A DNA stretch of 63,557 nucleotides, filler included, from Reticulomyxa filosa (taxonomy: Eukaryota > Protista > Foraminifera), in NCBI GenBank assembly GCA_000512085.1. It is 14 parts of 14 records of this genome, joined end to end, with 100 filler letters (N's around TTAATTAATTAA, not from the genome) between each part and the next. Parts side by side here need not be neighbours in the genome. Positions count along the whole stretch, not along the records: positions 11,615 to 20,874 come from ASPP01001535.1; 13 more parts are not named here. One strand, written 5' to 3'. A program made the translations under genes and the position numbers. Positions 11,615 to 20,874 of the stretch are shown in pieces. Numbering within the stretch: position 1 is the first letter of the stretch; every line of letters begins with the position of its first letter. Under the pieces are notes generated by a model. It ran no database searches. It saw only the letters and a program-made list of their open reading frames with translations, and was not told the origin of the DNA.

Positions 11615-11815
11615 CTTCACACCTTTCAATTGAGACAAATAGCCATATTTCTTGATTCGTTCTTCAACTGACTCGTTAGAAGAACGTTTTGGAATAGTAG
11701 CTGCGTATTTGTGAATAATCTTTGCCAGTATACCTCCGGTTCCTTTCAGCAAATTTGTTATTGCTTCCTTGCTGACCATTCCATCCAGAGCTTTATACAG
11801 CTCTTTCAATGCCAT
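11615..11815 (-). CDS. Hypothetical protein, runs off the contig end
   Basis: Open frame MALKELYKALDG...LSQLKGVK up to the linker; no recognisable motif. Confidence 0.35.
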
Positions 11816-12610
11816 ATCTTCTGGGAAATAAACTCTAAAGCGAGAATTAGTTGTTTTTTTTACAATTTATTCTCGCATTGCATTGGCTACTTCGAACACC
11901 GCACTAATAGCAGAATTTGAGATTGCATCTCCTGTTAAACATGCAATCAAACAGATTTTGTGTTTCCTTGTGAAATCTTATATTTCATATGCTTGTAAGA
12001 TAAACGTTTTGAAGATTTGTCAAATTCTAATTGCAAGTCGCCAACGATGCTATCTTCAACTTCTTTCATCTTCGACGTGATTTACTCAAACATATCCTTC
12101 GACTCATCATTCTTCAACGACTACACAAATGCATCTATGTACTATTTTCACTTATAAGTTTTTTTAGTCATTATATTTGAATAAAAATTATATATATTTA
12201 TTTTTTAAAAAAAACAAACAATATAAGTTGTAATATAAAATATAATTCAACTTAACTTATTACTTGCGACTAATCAATGCTACAACTTGGTCGCCATTAT
12301 TATTATAAAAAAATAAAAATAAAAAATAACTTAACAATATAATAATAATAACAAAACCAAATAACAAAACCATAATAACAATAACATAATGACCATATAA
12401 TAATAAATTAATAACAATCATTACGGTAGGTCATACACATTCCCAATGTATCGACGTAAACATGACGCCATTCACAAATATCACATATACGTATATGTAT
12501 TTATATACGTTATTGTCCATGCGTTTCGAAAAGCCCTATACGAATAAAAAAATGTGATTGATCAATGTCATTTTTTTTTCATCTAAAGTACATAAAAAAA
12601 AAAAAAAAAT

Positions 12611-12985
12611 CTAACTAATATCGATAGTGGTATTGCCATTGTTGATTGGGGATACGTTCTGAAGTTGATATGTAAAATGGTTTGTAAAGATAGCACGATC
12701 AATTGTATAACCACTACCACCACGATTGGGTTTTTCACCTTTGAATTTGATTGCGTCCTCTTTCATGTGCACCACTAATTTTCCTTTCTCCACTGCAATT
12801 CAATAAAAATTCTTTTCTGTACACACATTTTTTTGTTTTCTTTTTTTAGTCTTTTTTTTTTTCGTCTTTTTTTTTTTTCAGAAAATAACTGTAAAAGTTC
12901 ACAATTGACTGATCTATTGTCGCCAATCTTATCCAACACTTTCGAGATTTTAGTTTTCCAAAGAATAAACTCTTGTTTTGCAACA
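12611..12985 (-). CDS. Small spliced hypothetical protein or gene fragment
   Basis: Protein-like ORF 12611-12793 preceded by a poly-A intron-like tract and a short upstream open segment; no family recognised. Confidence 0.25.
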
Positions 12986-13607
12986 TCTATTTTTTATAGA
13001 ATAAACAAAGAGTTACTCCGTTTTTGTTTCTTAAAAAAAGGCAAAAAATTGCTTGTAATACTACTTGCAAATAACCTATTAAGTGATTGTTTAACAAGAT
13101 TTAACGTGTTGTCAACTTGAGACTAGAATTTGACTGGGATTCAGAATGTAAGCACTTGTTATTTTGTAATGATAAAGGCTTATCTATTTCATACAATCAA
13201 TACAACAACAGCTTTCATTTTTCTCATGTGCGTGTTTGCACCACACTCAGAACATTTTCTTCTTATTCTTTCATTTGTGTGAATTCTTTTATCATCTTTT
13301 TTTGGTGGAGAAAGTCATCCAAAAGGGCCTGTTTCACAACAAGTGTACAAATATTCAATAAATGGGAAACACGTGGACTTGTCCACTTTTAAAACATTTC
13401 ATAACGCAAAAAAAAAAATGAAACAATAAAATTTGTTTTTCTTCGCTGTACAGTTTTTTGTCACTCCATTGATTCTATTTCATCTATTTAATTTGTTGTT
13501 ATTCTGTGATTGTACTAGTTCTAGTTGAAGTACAGCGAAAGAAAGGTTGAAACCTTTTTAGGAACAGACTCCAACAGCTTCGAACAATTTTTAAGAAATA
13601 AAAAACA

Positions 13608-14070
13608 ATGGGACTTTGCTGTAGTGGAATAGATGCGAATCTTGCTGCCCATTCTGCGACAATACACTCGTTTCAGAAGACGTCTGCACCGAAAGAAGTG
13701 GACACAGTAAAAGGACAAGACAACAAACAGGAGTCAACAATATCACGTCCGTCGTATGGCAGTAATAGTTGCCCACAGCAAACATTTTCAAAAGAGGCCG
13801 TCCATGTCATGTACGACTTTTGGACAGATCACATTAAGTCACTTTCGGCCGAAAAAAAAACAGTTTCGTGTTGAAAACAAAGAAAGCGTTTTTTTGGTCA
13901 ATGCAATCTTGTGTTATTCTGTTTGTTAAAAGGAATATGTGTTTTAAACAGCAAATCGGAGTATTGCTATACAGTCACCTGTTTTGCAATTTGGTTCACT
14001 CTCGACAAATTTTTCTGAGTTGTGGAACCATTGAATCGGTTGGTTGGAAGCTGTTGGATCATGTTCGATT

Positions 14071-14106
<36 letters not shown>

Positions 14107-15067
14107 TTTGCGACCAAAAAACGGAAAAACAAAAAAAATGTTGCACAGATACAGCAAATGATACGGATACTTCATGAACATCCTGAAAACGAATGGATAA
14201 AAGAATTGCAACAGTTAGGGTCAACACATCGCCAATGGGGCATTCGCTACGGAAATTATCAACAATTTTTGCAAGCATTGCACTCGACCTTTGAAGAACA
14301 CTTTCAGGAAAGCAAAGTGTATTCACTGCGAATTAAATATTCCTTGGAAAACATTTTCACCAATGCAGCAGTCACAATAACAGGCCAAAATTTTTCAATA
14401 CTGTTTCGTGATCGTGTTGATGACTTTTTGTCGCTTGAGTTTCTTGACTCATTGGAAATTTGTTTGTCACATGCTACTGGTATGTTGCTTTTTTTTTTTT
14501 TTGTGTTTTTTCATACGAAGCGAATTTTGTTGTACTTGTTGTTTGTGAACTTATGTGTGTGTGTCGTGTTCGGTACATACATAGGCCGAGAATACTTTAA
14601 TCGGTATTTGGAACAATCATTTTGCACAGAATACGTAGTTTTTTTACGTAGTTTTGATGACTTCAAGAGACTAGCGTCAAGCATGGACCGGTTCGAAAAG
14701 GCGTCGAAAATATACCAAGAACACTTTTCTCTTTCTGCTGTTGCACACATTAACGTACCTGAGCATGAACACGTTCTACAGGTGTGAATAAATACTCTGT
14801 GTCTTCTTATGACTCACTTATAACAATCGCAAACATGTTTATTTGTTCCAACTTTTTTGAGAACAGCTCGAATCAACATTACATTTCTTTGCTGAAAAGT
14901 ACAAAAATGGTGAAAAGCCCAGTGATGAACTATCATTGGGTATGGATGCCGAACTGTTCGATAACCTTTATCATGATATAAAAAAGGGTATTGAACAAGA
15001 CATTTGGCCAAACTTCGTTGCAGCAATTCACTCGATCAAAGAAATTACTCGACCTCAATCTATTTAG
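13608..15067 (+). CDS. N-acylated globin-RGS fusion protein (364 aa; exons 13608-13862, 13952-14062, 14149-14479, 14585-14781, 14867-15067)
   Basis: All four introns are GT-AG and phase-compatible (total 1095 nt, no internal stop). N-terminus MGLCCSG. Globin motifs: W in helix A (DFW), LLYSHLF (B), RQIF (CD1), LGSTHRQWGI (F8 His), NYQQFLQALH (G). RGS motifs: SLEICLSHATGREYFNRYLEQSFCTEYVVFL..DDFK, KIYQEHF..HINV, LFDNLYHDIKKGIEQDIWPNF. Confidence 0.88.
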
Positions 15068-16046
15068 GTATTGAATTTCTTTTTTCAATTCAGATATTTA
15101 AGGAAATATATTTCTTATCTTTTAATTGTTGTGGATAATTTGGTTATCTTTTGGATCAAATAACTCTGACTCACACATCGCGTTCTCTTTTTTTTCTATT
15201 TTTTTGATTGTTGTGTGTGTGTGATTATTGTTCTAATTGTTGATATTATTACTTACTAAACTAACTCACCTCCTTTTTTTTTTCTGATTACTTGCCATTT
15301 TGATCATAAAAACTTATTCGTGTCCATTTTTGGCATCAAGTTATTGCAATTTGTGAAATAGTACAATCGTAATAAATATCCAAAATTAACTGCTCCAAGT
15401 ATTACTAAAAAAAAACCTTTGAAGCTTTTTAAAAATATAAATTGTCAACATATAAATTAATACATCAAATACGTACCGCACTGACTTTTTCAAAAATTAA
15501 ACAGGTAATGATTTGAGAGAAATTGTACAAAATACAAACAAAATCACTTTCATACGTCTTTTCATGCAAAGTTTCGTTGGTTTTTGGGACTTTTCGAACA
15601 ATCTGCTAGCCTGAAAGCAAGTACTCCGCAAGAAAACACGAAGAAATTCCGCACATCAAACGGACAAAAAAGACTATAGCTTCATCAAATGATGTGAAGA
15701 AATTTTTACCTTAAATTTTTTGTTTATGAAATTTTCTGAAATTTTAAGACTTAGCTGTTTATACATTTCATGCAAGTATTTTGTTTGTGATGTTAGATTA
15801 AATGAAAAACAAAGTGTTAAATTTGATGTTATAATTTTGTTCATTTTGACATATATTTATGTTTTGTGGTTGATTATGTTCCATTGATGTGATGTCCTGA
15901 TCACTATCTTAAAAAATACAAATTAATATTACAGAAAAGTCATTATTGATCGATATGTTGATATTTATCCAATTATATTACAGTATTGTTCAGCTTATTA
16001 AATACATTGAATTCAAAATACTATCTGACTGCCAATTTACAAACAA

Positions 16047-16112
16047 TACATGTAGTGACAAAAGTACAGATACATGAAATTTGCATCTTATATGTGAAAA
16101 ATCAACATTTTT
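16047..16112 (+). repeat. Dispersed repeat (TIR-like end), homologous to 48318-48420
   Basis: Both begin TACATGTAGTGACAAAAGTAC and share GCATCTTAT and AAAAATCAACATTTTT. Confidence 0.65.
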
Positions 16113-16569
16113 TGTCAATTACAAGCATTTCTATATTGTGTATGTGTTGGCTGTTACTTTGGCTTGTGTAGGGCAAGCCCTTATCACACATGGCTGAACG
16201 CCTATGGAACTGAGGAGCTCCCTTTGGGTTAAACCTCCTCAGCAAACTACCTCTTACTTGTTTTCTCTTTTACTTCTTTTGTCTTTAACTTTCAGTAAAT
16301 AAAAGTAAATTAAAGAATAATTCACTCTCATTGAGAGTAACACTATCCCGTATTACATTTAGTGAAGCTACTCACTGTAGACTTCCTACACTTGCACAAA
16401 GCGTAATACGAAAATATTGCTATATTTTGTTTGTTTTATTTTAAAGCTCTTTTACTTTTTTTTACAGTAGCGTCCAAAAAAAAGTTAGCCTACCGAAAAA
16501 TCAGATTATTTAAAAAGTTATTTTTTATATTTGTCCACTTAAGTTACAAATCTGTAATTTTACATACAT

Positions 16570-17352
16570 ATTGAACTTATACTGTTGTTAAATTGACTAA
16601 AATTTGATAGTTATATCTTTGTTAGTTTAGAAAATATAATTTTGTAGTTAATAAAAAAGTTCACTTTTTGAATAGCTATTGATCTAATAAAGGCTTACAA
16701 TGTCAAAATATGTACTTTTTTTCACAAAACACTTTATTTATAATCCAAATCATAAAAAATAATCTCATTTACCATTTGGTGGAATCACCTTTAGCTTGGA
16801 TCAAGTCATATATTTTATTTAGCATAGAATCAATTAGTTTTTCACACAAACTAGCTTTGATATTATACTATTGATTGCTAAACTAATCAAAAAGATCTTC
16901 GTATAAACTTTACACTTTACGATATACTATATGTCTAAATAAGATTTATACTATGACTGTTCACAGGCAATTTAATCAAATGTATTTCATTCTCTTCAAA
17001 CAATCTTTATGTATATATTGATTTGTGACATTCGTAATACTACGTTCACTTCTTAGTATATCGACGTCTATGGCCTTGTCAAATTAAGTGATATAATTTA
17101 CAATTACACTAAATTATTCTTTACATGTTTATTGCTGATGTGAATTTGTTTTCTCAAAAAAAGATTTTTTGTTATATGAAATCAATGAATGAACTTCCGT
17201 AAGTTCAAAAAAGTGAACTTTTTTATTAACTACAGATTATTTTCTAAACAAACTTCAAAAGCTAATTTTTTAAATTTTGATTCTAATTTTCAATTCTAAA
17301 ATGCAATTGTATTAATTGGTTCATTTAGTAAAATTTTACAGTTTATGTTCAA
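16570..17352. mobile_element. Degenerate inverted-repeat (MITE/foldback-like) element
   Basis: 16625-16672 (GTTTAGAAAAT..TGTAGTTAATAAAAAAGTTCACTTTTTGAA) is the near reverse complement of ~17204-17249. An outer pair at ~16570-16605 and ~17320-17352 also matches. Non-coding. Confidence 0.55.
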
Positions 17353-18445
17353 TTTTGCGTTGTGTTATTCTTTTGTTATTTTGCACTTATAAAATTTATA
17401 ATGTGTAAAAAAGAACAAAGATATGGTAATTGAAAATTGTAGAAGAATGAATTGCATTTTGAAACATTTGAAAATGTATATTTATGATGTAGCTCATATT
17501 TTCATATAGATCTTTTTGTAATACAAATTATTATTAATCAAATGATATTTTTTAAAATTATTATATAATGAAAAAAATTAAATATGAGTATATTTTGTTT
17601 GAATTCAACTTCAATAGCAACTCATAAACATTAATATCACATGACAGATATTGTCAAGTGGTAATTTACGCGTTTGGTAAACTTGGCCAAAATCGGCTGA
17701 GAACGAACAAGATTTCACTTTCCAAATGAAACATACATTAAATTTAAGAAAAATTAATTTTACTTTATATATCAATTTCTGATTTCAATCCACTTATAAT
17801 ATTTTCACGTAAAAAAATATTATTAAAATGTTGACAGTGTTCATAATGAAACATAATGGCTTATTAAATATAGTGTGATTATATATTACATGTATGTTTA
17901 CAGATCTGAATTGCATCGTATTGGACTATCTTTACAATAAGATTCAGCTTTTTGCACAAAGCAACAAGTTATACATATAAAATGTATTCACCGCCGTCAC
18001 TATATCTCACTAGATCTGGTTAACATAGTATATCAAATCGTTTACCAATATTCCACAGCATATTACTCTTTTTTTCAAACACATGAAGTTTAAGTAGTCT
18101 TAAGTTTTAAATAAAGACATAAAAATTTCAACACAATAATTAAAGAGGTACTAGTTGGTCACTTTAAATTTTTTCTCACAGACCCTTTTTTTGATTCGTT
18201 GCTTTCCTTTTTTTTTGTAGGAAAAACCCAAAAAATTGAGGTGCACTTACTGATTGCCTTCCTTTGGCTTTTCCATTGAAAAAAATGTTTCAAACGTCAA
18301 TCAGTTAGCAAATGAACTCATCAAAACACAAAACACTCAGCCCAATTAAAACCCAAATATGACGCTATTATTCATCCAGATTTCATCACTTCCTCCCTTT
18401 CACATGAAAGCAACATTCAGCTTTCGGCTTTCGTATTATGCAAGC

Positions 18446-19152
18446 TTACTTATACGAGACTCGGTCACAAGCAACATACCCTTTTTGAAACTCACCACCT
18501 TTAAACACTGCAACGCCAATTACCCCTTTTGTTTTTTCACAATCGCTCAATGGTTGAGCTGACAGCAATTGTTGCAGTGCGAAAAGCAGTTGTTGTTGTT
18601 GACTGTTTTGATCTTTCGTTTTATCGTCCAAATCGATGTTGATGTCTGCCGAAGATAATTGAATGCTGGGACCACTGCAAGCTAAATATTTTATGTGGTA
18701 ATCTTCAAAAGGATACGTCACATTTTCAATGCTCACTTCAATCTTGTCGTCAGCTTTCTTGCTGCCTCCACCGCATATATTGTCAAAGTCATTTTGATTC
18801 TCTATCTTCCACCAATCATTCACTAATTCACACTCTTTTCCAGTGTAGCCATGAATCTTGCTCTGAGGGCATTCCAGTTTGTTTGTTTTGTTTTGTTTTG
18901 TTTTCTATGACATCTTTGATGACAATCCCAAAAGGGAGCAATTCTATTTTATTCCTTTTTTATGAAAAGTAGCCAAACTTGGGATTGGATATGTGTTGCC
19001 GCCCCTTTCTTGAAGATTACTGCGTCGCACATTCGACATCGAACATCTTTACTGTTGGTGTTGTCTGTCTCCTTTGGGACGTCAGTTATCAAATTAAGAG
19101 ATTTTTCTGTTTCTTGAGTTACGTCTTCTTTTGACAAAGGAGCTTGTGCCAT
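18446..19152 (-). CDS. MSS4: Mss4/RABIF-like Rab chaperone/GEF (intron 18863-18978)
   Basis: NSKDVRCRMCDAVIFKKGAA...WWKIENQNDFDNIC...KYLACS...DCEKTKGVIG...YVACDRV matches the Mss4 pattern (CxxC, W.V.DMF.FEN, FL.CADCE.GPIG, YVA.ERV). Confidence 0.8.
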
Positions 19153-19489
19153 GAGATTTCTTTTATTGGTAGAATTTATCTCAAATAAAAACAAAAATTT
19201 TTTTGTTTGTTTCGCCTCCTTTTTTTTTTAAAAAACACAAAAAATGCTCTGCTTTTTCTTGCTACTATTAAATTAACAACGAGACTTGGCCATCAAGTAA
19301 AGAACTGAAATTTTCAATTTGTTTCCGTTTCGGAAAGAGAAAGTAGTTTCTAGCAACTCCATAAATGCATTTTTTAAAATCAACCTTTGTTCGACAATAA
19401 CTTACACGCAGAACAAATAATAACAACCTTAAAAAAGACAATGAATCATGATAGTAATATTGATGTAAAAAAAATTTGAAAGACGACAT

Positions 19490-20839
19490 TTAAAATCTCT
19501 TTTGTAGCGTGGGTAATGTTCTGCCCCACCAAGGGCCTTGAAATGATGCCACCTTGGGTCGTATTTTTTGTAAAGGGATAGTCAATCGCATAAAAATGTT
19601 TTCAGCCCCAGAAGCATCAGTTTCGGAAATTTTTTCAAATCCTTGACAGTTCAAAATTCCTTCGATTCTATGTTAACACAAAGTATTTGATATATCTTTG
19701 TTTATGCACATCTCGTATTGTTGTTCGAGCATTTTTTTTCTCCCCTTCCTTACGCTAACATGTTTACGGGTAAGTGGAGATCATCTTTAAGGTATTCGTT
19801 CAGCGAGCTTATTTTAATAGTCCAACCTCCAATACGAAGTGCCATCAAACAGAGCAAGCCACTCAAACGCATTCGCTCGCTGTTTTTCAAATAGAAACTG
19901 CCTTTTGTAAAAGTTTCAACTACTCTCTGAATAAATGGATCATCAAGAAAGTGAAAGAATTCCAAGAATGACTCGGACAATAGCTGATAGCACATTTCAT
20001 ACACAACCAAAGACTTTAAGGAATCCTCATGATCTTTTTTCATTTCCTCTGAAAAATTTTGATATTGTTTATGCACGTGCTGAAAGAATTTCGATGCGTT
20101 TTTCCTTGTGAGTTCCAACAATCAAACATATACATACACACACACATATGCAATTCCTTCATACTATACTTCAGAAACTGTAATCAAGACTGGAAGAGAA
20201 AGAAATGAGCTCTGTCAAAGATCGGAGACAAAAGATAAAGATATATACGGATATAGATACAATTCCATTTCTACTCATAAAACGTACAGTTCTCCTGGGA
20301 AAGTTTCCCAGTATGGCAAAATCGATTCTATATGTATTTCGTTTAAAAACATATTTGGTAAAATTAGTTTGAGTTCATAAATTTCGTCGCCAGTTGTTCC
20401 ATCTTTGTTGCATGGAAATTCTGTTTTTATTTGTTGAGTTTGTGTTTTCGTTTCATGTTTGTGTGAAAGAACATATCCGGAACATTCCTTCTTTTATATA
20501 CATATATATTTATTAAAAAAAAAAGCAACAACAACAAAATACTACATACCAAAAACAGAAAAGCTGTTCTTGGTCGATTGATATTGATAAATGCAAGTAT
20601 AATGCGAATCGTCAGATTTCAATTGCTTTTGCCGAGGTTCCATCATTAACGACGTTGTTTTGCCTTGATCGGCGCTTATCTGTTCTGCATTCATCTGCGT
20701 GTAAGATCTCTTCAGTATTCCCCCTTTCGCGGATATTTCGCTTTCGTCTTCGCTTTTATTCTCACTTTCATTTATATTTATATTTTCGTCTGCGTTCGGT
20801 CCCTGTTTCCCACATTACATTGTGCGACTTTGCGATTGA

Positions 20840-20840
<1 letters not shown>
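19490..20840 (-). CDS. RPA49: RNA polymerase I subunit RPA49/PAF53-like protein, multi-exon, 5' end uncertain or partial
   Basis: Exon peptides FPCNKDGTTGDEIYELKLIL, LLCLMALRIGGWTIKISSL..LKDDLHLP and MRLTIPL echo A49 motifs (PP.N..A..P.DVY.L..II; ILALH.D.F.V....L..DLKL; A.L.LPL). The last exon ends with TAA at 19490. Confidence 0.6.

Positions 20841-20874
<34 letters not shown>

Follow-up and report, generated by a model that had tools for sequence, protein, structure and literature searches.

Our study concerns a gene in a composite stretch of 63,557 nucleotides of DNA from Reticulomyxa filosa, a naked freshwater foraminifer, to which we refer as the window. This gene, RFI_01537, is located at positions 13608-15067 on the plus strand of a 9260-nucleotide piece of the window (11615-20874). 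In our reconstruction it codes for a protein in which a predicted lipid anchor and a polar linker are followed by a globin and a regulator of G-protein signalling (RGS) domain. Based on sequence comparisons and predicted structures, we propose this protein as a candidate for a sensor in which a haem-globin is fused to an output that is eukaryotic and new for such chimeras, an arrangement that would be family-wide in foraminifera. In its specific form, our interpretation describes a membrane-anchored haem-globin whose ligand or redox state would control the action of the RGS domain on G-alpha subunits, a reading whose probability we place somewhat above even.

The rebuilt gene consists of five exons with a total length of 1095 nucleotides, corresponding to 364 codons and a TAG stop (Table 1). 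A script-based count of length, phase and stops found no internal stop codon and thus reproduced the uninterrupted, phase-compatible model with five exons and four introns that had been put forward in an earlier note on this DNA, made from the sequence alone. All four introns are of the GT-AG type, with lengths of 85-105 nucleotides and a GC content of 22-32%, compared to 36-44% in the exons, and an in-frame TAA is found 9 nucleotides upstream of the ATG. The parts listed in the same note, comprising an MGLCCSG start, a polar linker (here of about 55 residues and predicted to be disordered), the globin and the RGS domain, could all be located in the spliced protein in this order.

The borders of the exons are reflected in the relationship to homologous sequences. 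Foraminiferal proteins derived from transcripts align in order to exons 2-5 of RFI_01537, and intron 3 appears as an exact gap of 35 residues with respect to the transcript-derived homologues P0006, P0069, P0070 and P0003. In the genomic locus of the paralogue RFI_19592 (L001), which is 41-63% identical to RFI_01537 over the five aligned exon segments, similarity stops at the same four borders in an exon-by-exon tblastn comparison. The end of exon 1 agrees between both genes, with the paralogue reading ...EEKT ahead of the GT (...AAA ACA/GT, as in the window), and a strong GTACGT donor of L001 directly follows the codon that is homologous to the window His codon 14060-14062. Exon 5 was matched by tblastn with P0069 (E 3e-8), P0004 (2e-12) and P0002 (1e-16). 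For intron 2, alternative phase-0 sites exist at a donor at 14072, which would add the three residues VRL, and at an acceptor at 14154. Both appear less likely than the assignment to 14063-14148, which is favoured because it leaves the E helix without gaps relative to P0002, P0005 and P0006 and because of the GTACGT donor of L001.

The corresponding GenBank model (P0001) encompasses 390 residues and is mis-spliced at several places. It translates most of intron 1, with a very short gap after exon 1, retains intron 3 as 35 residues and continues after exon 4 in a wrong frame, by which half of the RGS domain is lost. The length of intron 3, which is a multiple of three, together with its lack of stops, explains why the automatic annotation has read through it. 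The GenBank models of all four members of the family in R. filosa (P0001, P0002, P0004 and P0005) are mis-spliced with in-frame intron segments kept, and the model of RFI_19592 contains an upstream extension ahead of its MGNCY start. As a consequence of this mis-splicing, the public records show either the RGS domain only or no domain at all. Our analysis corrects these four models.

The properties of the globin domain emerge from the comparison of the family as a whole. Domain searches were carried out with the separate exons, the stop-free read-through 14149-14781 and the GenBank model P0001. With the Pfam Globin model (PF00042), P0001 scored 17.1 bits at a cut-off of 22, a search of PDB sequences with exon 3 as single sequence gave no match, and a profile of the four paralogues found weak globin matches only (E 0.055). 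Among 1.84 billion representative proteins, a profile built from the globin segments of all four R. filosa genes recovered 67 at E<=0.001. Among the 63 of these relatives that were scanned, Pfam recognised Globin in 37 (E<=0.001), RGS in 29 and Protoglobin in 12, with matches to Protoglobin being fewer and weaker than those to Globin. The closest relative outside Reticulomyxa, P0006 from Nonionella, passes both models (Globin 27.8 bits, RGS 48.8 bits). A family profile of 36 sequences, with the window segment in the first row, was matched by 63 PDB sequences at E<=0.01, every one of them a globin. The best match is Hell's Gate globin I (3s1i, E 3.4e-16), followed by a globin fused to Roadblock/LC7 (1.1e-12), plant non-symbiotic haemoglobins (from 3.6e-10), neuroglobin (from 1.8e-6) and flavohaemoglobins (5.7e-4). 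HemAT, protoglobins and sensor globins are absent from the best 60 of these 63 matches.

In the near-gapless alignment with 3s1i, the helix A Trp is shared, LLY leads to Tyr29 (B10), RQIF to Phe43 (CD1), and LGSTH is placed on LGRRH and thus on His82 (F8). The residues singled out in the earlier note, a Trp in helix A, the LLYSHLF segment, a Phe at CD1 and the His of LGSTHRQWGI, thereby map to the A-helix Trp, Tyr B10, Phe CD1 and His F8. In the same register, the window protein contains Val at E7, Lys at E10, Leu at E11, His at E14 and Tyr at G5. The His of the sequence LLDH was considered as distal E7 ligand and rejected, since this residue falls on E14 in the profile alignment, a Met position in the family, and E7 is occupied by Val. 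At E14, Met is found in 35 of 39 family members and His (codon 14060-14062) in the window protein. A His in helix G is found in 37 of 39 members and a Tyr preceding helix H is invariant. Together with the E14 residue, both could line the haem edge or the interface between the domains.

An AlphaFold model of P0001:58-240 was predicted with a pLDDT (predicted local distance difference test) score of 84.3, although about 30 residues of the retained intron were included, and its top 50 Foldseek matches are all globins or globin-containing proteins. Its superposition on 3s1i with VIA-align (Z 16.1, root-mean-square deviation 2.0 Å) covers 131 of 131 residues, in line with the 3/3 globin read in the earlier note, and the model of the homologue P0006 matches the whole chain of 3s1i with a Z of 17.9. 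As judged from profiles and predicted structures, the window globin is real and complete, and it is a 3-on-3 globin of the flavohaemoglobin-like single-domain type and not of the sensor or protoglobin lineage.

The RGS domain is already apparent from a single exon. Exon 4 alone scores 33.4 bits with the Pfam RGS model (PF00615, cut-off 23.9) and the read-through 14149-14781 scores 34.7 bits, while a scan of exons 1, 2 and 5 separately found no Pfam family. In phmmer searches of PDB sequences, exon 4 aligns to RGS10 without gaps (E 2.3e-4) and also matches RGS2, RGS14, RGS3, RGS5 and RGS4, which are all RGS proteins of the GTPase-activating protein (GAP) type, belonging to the R4 and R12 kinds, and none of the PDB sequences matched is an RGS-homology domain of the GRK, axin or RhoGEF kind. 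The completeness of the fold was judged on the homologue P0006 from Nonionella, whose sequence is 39% identical to the window protein over exons 3-4. In its AlphaFold model, residues 234-382 superpose on RGS3, RGS8 (in complex with G-alpha-i3) and RGS4 with Z 15.5-15.7 and root-mean-square deviations of 1.9-2.0 Å over 125-127 residues, and the part that is homologous to exon 5 falls inside this stretch. The earlier claim of a complete RGS domain is thus borne out by the Pfam match of exon 4, its gapless alignment to RGS10, RGS2 and RGS4, the predicted fold of the homologue and the C-terminal alignment of exon 5, which confirm, at the level of sequence and model, that RFI_01537 carries a canonical RGS domain with a complete nine-helix fold.

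For the interaction with G-alpha, we have compared seven residues of RGS4 which we take to be its contacts in the complex with G-alpha-i1, namely Ser85, Glu87, Asn88, Asn128, Asp163, Ser164 and Arg167. The alignment of the window sequence ...HINVP on ...QVNVE identifies an Asn encoded in exon 4 as counterpart of Asn128. With CTEY placed on SEEN, Glu87 is kept whereas Ser85 is replaced by Cys and Asn88 by Tyr, and the family alignment of ...IEQDIWPNF in exon 5 on ...MEKDSYRRF shows that Asp163 is kept and that Ile and Asn are found in place of Ser164 and Arg167. Three of the seven contacts (Glu87, Asn128 and Asp163) are thus preserved in the window protein.

Features at both ends of the globin relate to its attachment and to its connection with the RGS domain. 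Several canonical RGS proteins of the GAP type are targeted to the membrane by N-terminal palmitoylation. In RFI_01537, the sequence MGLCCSG fits the PROSITE pattern PS00008 for N-myristoylation at Gly2 and has Cys4 and Cys5 as possible sites of palmitoylation, in accordance with the acylation signature that had been read from it before, and the protein is thus probably anchored to the membrane by predicted lipidation. Among 48 N-termini of the family, 31 start with MG, 18 fit the PROSITE pattern and eight, including that of the window gene, contain a Cys within residues 3-7. Most sequences lacking an MG start are either 5' fragments or contain an internal MG that is aligned to the common start. 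The first 83 residues in the model of P0006 are disordered, which would fit a flexible tether. In the closest relatives, the invariant columns are located almost entirely in the stretch that connects globin helix H to RGS helix 1, which is how we would expect a junction that transmits a signal to look.

The same architecture is found in other foraminifera. Local hidden Markov models for both domains detected a globin followed by an RGS domain in about 40 cluster representatives, and all named sources of these members, Nonionella stella, Bolivina argentea, Ammonia sp. and Elphidium margaritaceum, are foraminifera, the group in whose transcriptomes the earlier note had suggested looking for such relatives. 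Since these members come from protein sets derived from transcriptomes, the fusion exists on single messages, and the presence of both domains on single transcripts in at least four other foraminiferal genera argues against an artefact of gene prediction. In the globin part of the family, the helix A Trp (A12) is conserved in 32 of 33 members, Tyr or Phe at B10 in 31 of 34 and His F8 in 37 of 39, and Leu F4 and the Gly at FG are conserved as well. The RGS part contains an invariant Cys, an invariant Glu at the position of Glu87 and an invariant Trp. P0006 from Nonionella stella and P0069 from Bolivina argentea are identical over their shared length (100% aligned, zero branch length), and other clusters likewise mix sequences of the two species. 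The identity of P0006 and P0069 suggests cross-contamination or shared material between both transcriptomes.

Within R. filosa, a search with the read-through of exon 3, intron 3 and exon 4 returned RFI_01537, its paralogue RFI_04280 and one environmental fragment, and a second search added the paralogues RFI_19592 and RFI_29246. In a quick maximum-likelihood tree, which is midpoint-rooted and in which the branch of the window protein is lengthened by residues of the retained intron, all four genes of R. filosa group together (support 97), next to the Nonionella/Bolivina group of P0006 as their sister (98), and RFI_01537 is sister to the other three (98).

Sensors with a haem-globin fused to chemotaxis, cyclic di-GMP, kinase or cyclase outputs are well known in bacteria and archaea. 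Like these globin-coupled sensors, which include HemAT and the chimeras with diguanylate cyclases, kinases and adenylate cyclases, RFI_01537 combines an N-terminal 3-on-3 globin and a C-terminal signalling output in one chain. In globin-coupled sensors, the ligand state of the haem is thought to control the output (PMC7475203). In contrast, RFI_01537 is a eukaryotic and predicted lipid-anchored protein with an RGS domain as eukaryotic output, and its globin is of the flavohaemoglobin-like single-domain lineage instead of the sensor lineage. By analogy, it would thus resemble a globin-coupled sensor in its working while falling outside this lineage with respect to both globin type and output domain. 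A review of globins from 2020 names chemotaxis, kinase, diguanylate cyclase, adenylate cyclase and gene regulation as outputs of globin sensors, with RGS being absent (PMC7475203). Our own full-text literature search, conducted in limited libraries, did not find a paper combining a globin with an RGS domain, and it returned nothing relevant for Reticulomyxa or Nonionella in conjunction with globin. In a shape search of the ESM Atlas, RGS clusters contained PDZ, DEP and EF-hand partners only and none with a globin, and a feature search of the same resource gave no usable match. Within the reach of these libraries, the searches agree with the earlier note, whose reader knew of no described globin-RGS architecture.

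Single aspects of the protein have counterparts in other systems. Hell's Gate globin I from Methylacidiphilum infernorum, the best match by profile and structure, has Tyr B10, Phe CD1, His F8 and Tyr G5 in common with RFI_01537, but is a free single-domain bacterial protein with Gln at E7 (Val in the window) that lacks a lipid anchor and an output domain. Globin X, a membrane globin of vertebrates and invertebrates that is myristoylated and palmitoylated, also combines an N-terminal signal for myristoylation at Gly2 with Cys palmitoylation (PMC7475203), but carries neither an RGS nor another output domain. Neuroglobin is reported to be a dissociation inhibitor for G-alpha-i/o (PMC4842972), and also connects a globin to heterotrimeric G-protein signalling in dependence on the redox state. 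However, this inhibition is exerted in trans by a protein of one domain, whereas the RGS domain of RFI_01537 is covalently fused and its expected activity is that of a GAP. We regard neuroglobin as a functional precedent for the link between globins and G-proteins, in trans and without an RGS domain. With canonical GAP-type RGS proteins (RGS4, RGS8, RGS10 and RGS16), RFI_01537 shares the gapless similarity of exon 4, the fold of its homologue (Z about 15.6) and the counterparts of Glu87, Asn128 and Asp163. It differs from them by a Cys at the position of Ser85, which is found in 39 of 40 family members, by a hydrophobic or aromatic residue at Asn88 (Tyr in the window), by Ile and Asn at Ser164 and Arg167 in the window protein, by an extra loop between the late helices and by the presence of an N-terminal globin.

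In the mechanism that we propose, the protein would reside at the inner face of the membrane, beside G-alpha subunits that are presumed to be lipid-anchored themselves. Haem would be bound through His F8, and a ligand on the haem would be stabilised by Tyr B10. Binding of O2 or nitric oxide (NO), or the ferric or ferrous state of the haem, would alter the conformation of the globin, and this change would be relayed via helix H and the linker helix to the RGS domain. There, it would alter the binding of GTP-bound G-alpha and the acceleration of hydrolysis and thus allow oxygen or NO to set the duration of the G-protein signal. The GAP activity of the fusion and the coupling between its domains, like the binding of haem and the expression of the gene in R. 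filosa, are features that we infer.

Several observations weigh against this mechanism. The Pfam analysis suggested in the earlier note was successful for the RGS domain of exon 4 at the score given above, whereas for the globin, exon 3 alone reached 19.9 bits and remained under the cut-off of 22. The globin lies outside the sensor (S) lineage, to which the globins of bacterial globin-coupled sensors belong, binding of haem through His F8 is presumed from the sequence, and the junctions of RFI_01537 are derived from comparative evidence. In the RGS domain, the substitutions described above (Ser85 to Cys, Asn88 to Tyr, Ser164 to Ile and Arg167 to Asn) change four of the seven RGS4 contacts. A G-alpha partner in foraminifera is equally presumed, and two papers mentioning Reticulomyxa state nothing on its set of G-alpha subunits. 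Finally, three R. filosa paralogues (P0002, P0004 and P0005; L001 2419-2685) contain a Tyr instead of His at F8, and P0002 and P0004 contain Glu or Asp at the position of Asn128 (Asp in RFI_19592), with P0005 ending before this site, which illustrates that the lineage tolerates the loss of both canonical residues. The change to Tyr at F8 is confined to one derived R. filosa sub-clade in the quick tree. RFI_01537 keeps His F8 and the counterpart of Asn128 and by its sequence looks like the canonical copy, while the paralogues with Tyr at F8 may lack haem or be locked in the ferric state, and the surface of their RGS domain may be altered. Their coexistence offers a natural contrast within one genome between a protein that keeps both residues and paralogues that have lost them.

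An alternative function, which we consider unlikely, would be that of a membrane enzyme or protector, with the globin serving as NO dioxygenase, nitrite reductase or guard against reactive oxygen and the RGS domain either used for docking only or acting constitutively. Globins of the flavohaemoglobin-like kind, which turn over NO, typically contain Tyr at B10 and G5, the best match in structure and sequence is a single-domain bacterial globin and not a sensor globin, and a protective role has been proposed for globin X, which is likewise an acylated globin of the membrane (PMC7475203). Conversely, the conservation of the fusion and of the junction helix over about 40 clusters suggests that the two domains work as a unit, RFI_01537 contains no reductase partner domain, and its RGS domain keeps the counterparts of Asn128 and Glu87, which are important for the action on G-alpha and thus speak against a role in docking only.

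It is less likely again that the globin fold has no haem, as in the non-haem globins of RsbR or in photoglobins, and serves as a module for dimerisation or protein binding on an otherwise ordinary membrane RGS protein. The existence of non-haem globin families (PMC8717448), the replacement of His F8 by Tyr in three of the four R. filosa paralogues and the failure of the window exons to reach the Pfam Globin cut-off would be compatible with such a module. However, the pocket residues His F8, Phe CD1, Tyr B10 and Tyr G5 are all present in RFI_01537 itself. His occupies F8 in 37 of 39 aligned family members, and in the quick tree the change to Tyr is limited to one derived R. filosa sub-clade. 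That two adjacent genes, or a decaying pseudogene, were merely joined on paper is very improbable and, although the models of all four paralogues are visibly mis-spliced and the R. filosa junctions rest on comparison, essentially excluded and largely refuted by the single transcript-derived open reading frames (ORFs) from four other genera that hold both domains, by exon 3, which begins within helix E of the globin and continues without a break into RGS helix 1, and by the intact state of all exons, whose borders are shared with a paralogue.

Many foraminifera thrive in hypoxic or anoxic sediment, and we know of no described mechanism by which they sense oxygen and nitrogen oxides. The globin-RGS family offers a concrete and expressible candidate for this process, composed of two small and well-understood domains that are each accessible to standard assays in vitro, the globin by its Soret spectrum and ligand kinetics and the RGS domain by single-turnover GTPase measurements. 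The broader proposal that lipid-anchored haem sensors form a large family specific to the foraminiferal lineage, with the globin directly gating the RGS domain, is tentative and in our estimate falls a little short of an even chance. If true, how long heterotrimeric G-protein signals persist at the membrane would be tied to O2, NO or the redox state, the family would be the eukaryotic equivalent of the globin-coupled sensors of bacteria, with an output not known before, and it would be a candidate for how foraminifera sense and move along the steep gradients of oxygen and nitrate in sediments.

The globin profile has also found P0011 (2352 residues), P0012, P0014, P0024 (3690 residues), P0023 and P0028. 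Among its matches are very long proteins with up to nine globin-like stretches and without an RGS domain. Two matches carry cytochrome b5 and one carries the signalling domain of methyl-accepting chemotaxis proteins.

Table 1. Exons and introns of RFI_01537 and other ORFs on the same piece of the window (positions along the window).
Feature	Position	Strand	Description
Exon 1	13608-13862	+	phase 0; start codon, MGLCCSG (13608-13628), polar linker of about 55 residues, globin helix A with FW motif
Intron 1	13863-13951	+	89 nucleotides, GT-AG, in-frame stop; position conserved in L001
Exon 2	13952-14062	+	globin helices B, C and beginning of E; Tyr B10 codon 13970-13972; Phe CD1 is the Phe of RQIF
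Intron 2	14063-14148	+	86 nucleotides, GT-AG; run of 33 T at 14073-14105
Exon 3	14149-14479	+	remainder of helix E, helices F, G and H, linker helix, RGS helix 1; proximal His F8 codon 14227-14229, Tyr G5 10 residues further on
Intron 3	14480-14584	+	105 nucleotides, GTATGT...AG; in frame, stop-free; wrongly kept in GenBank model
Exon 4	14585-14781	+	enters in phase 1; RGS core; CTEY corresponds to SEEN of RGS4, Asn 14752-14754 to Asn128 of RGS4
Intron 4	14782-14866	+	85 nucleotides, GT-AG, in-frame stops; position conserved in L001
Exon 5	14867-15067	+	C-terminal RGS helices with family-invariant Trp; TAG stop 15065-15067
ORF	11618-11815	-	cut by left edge of the piece; no significant Pfam family
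Two ORFs within 18446-19194	18449-18823 and 18952-19194	-	weak Pfam Mss4 matches (E 0.02-0.03) to successive parts of the model
ORF	19753-20121	-	123 residues; no significant Pfam family

Downstream of the globin-RGS gene and in convergent orientation, the two ORFs with similarity to Mss4 (Table 1) are probably the exons of a two-exon gene for an Mss4-like guanine-nucleotide exchange factor of Rab proteins.

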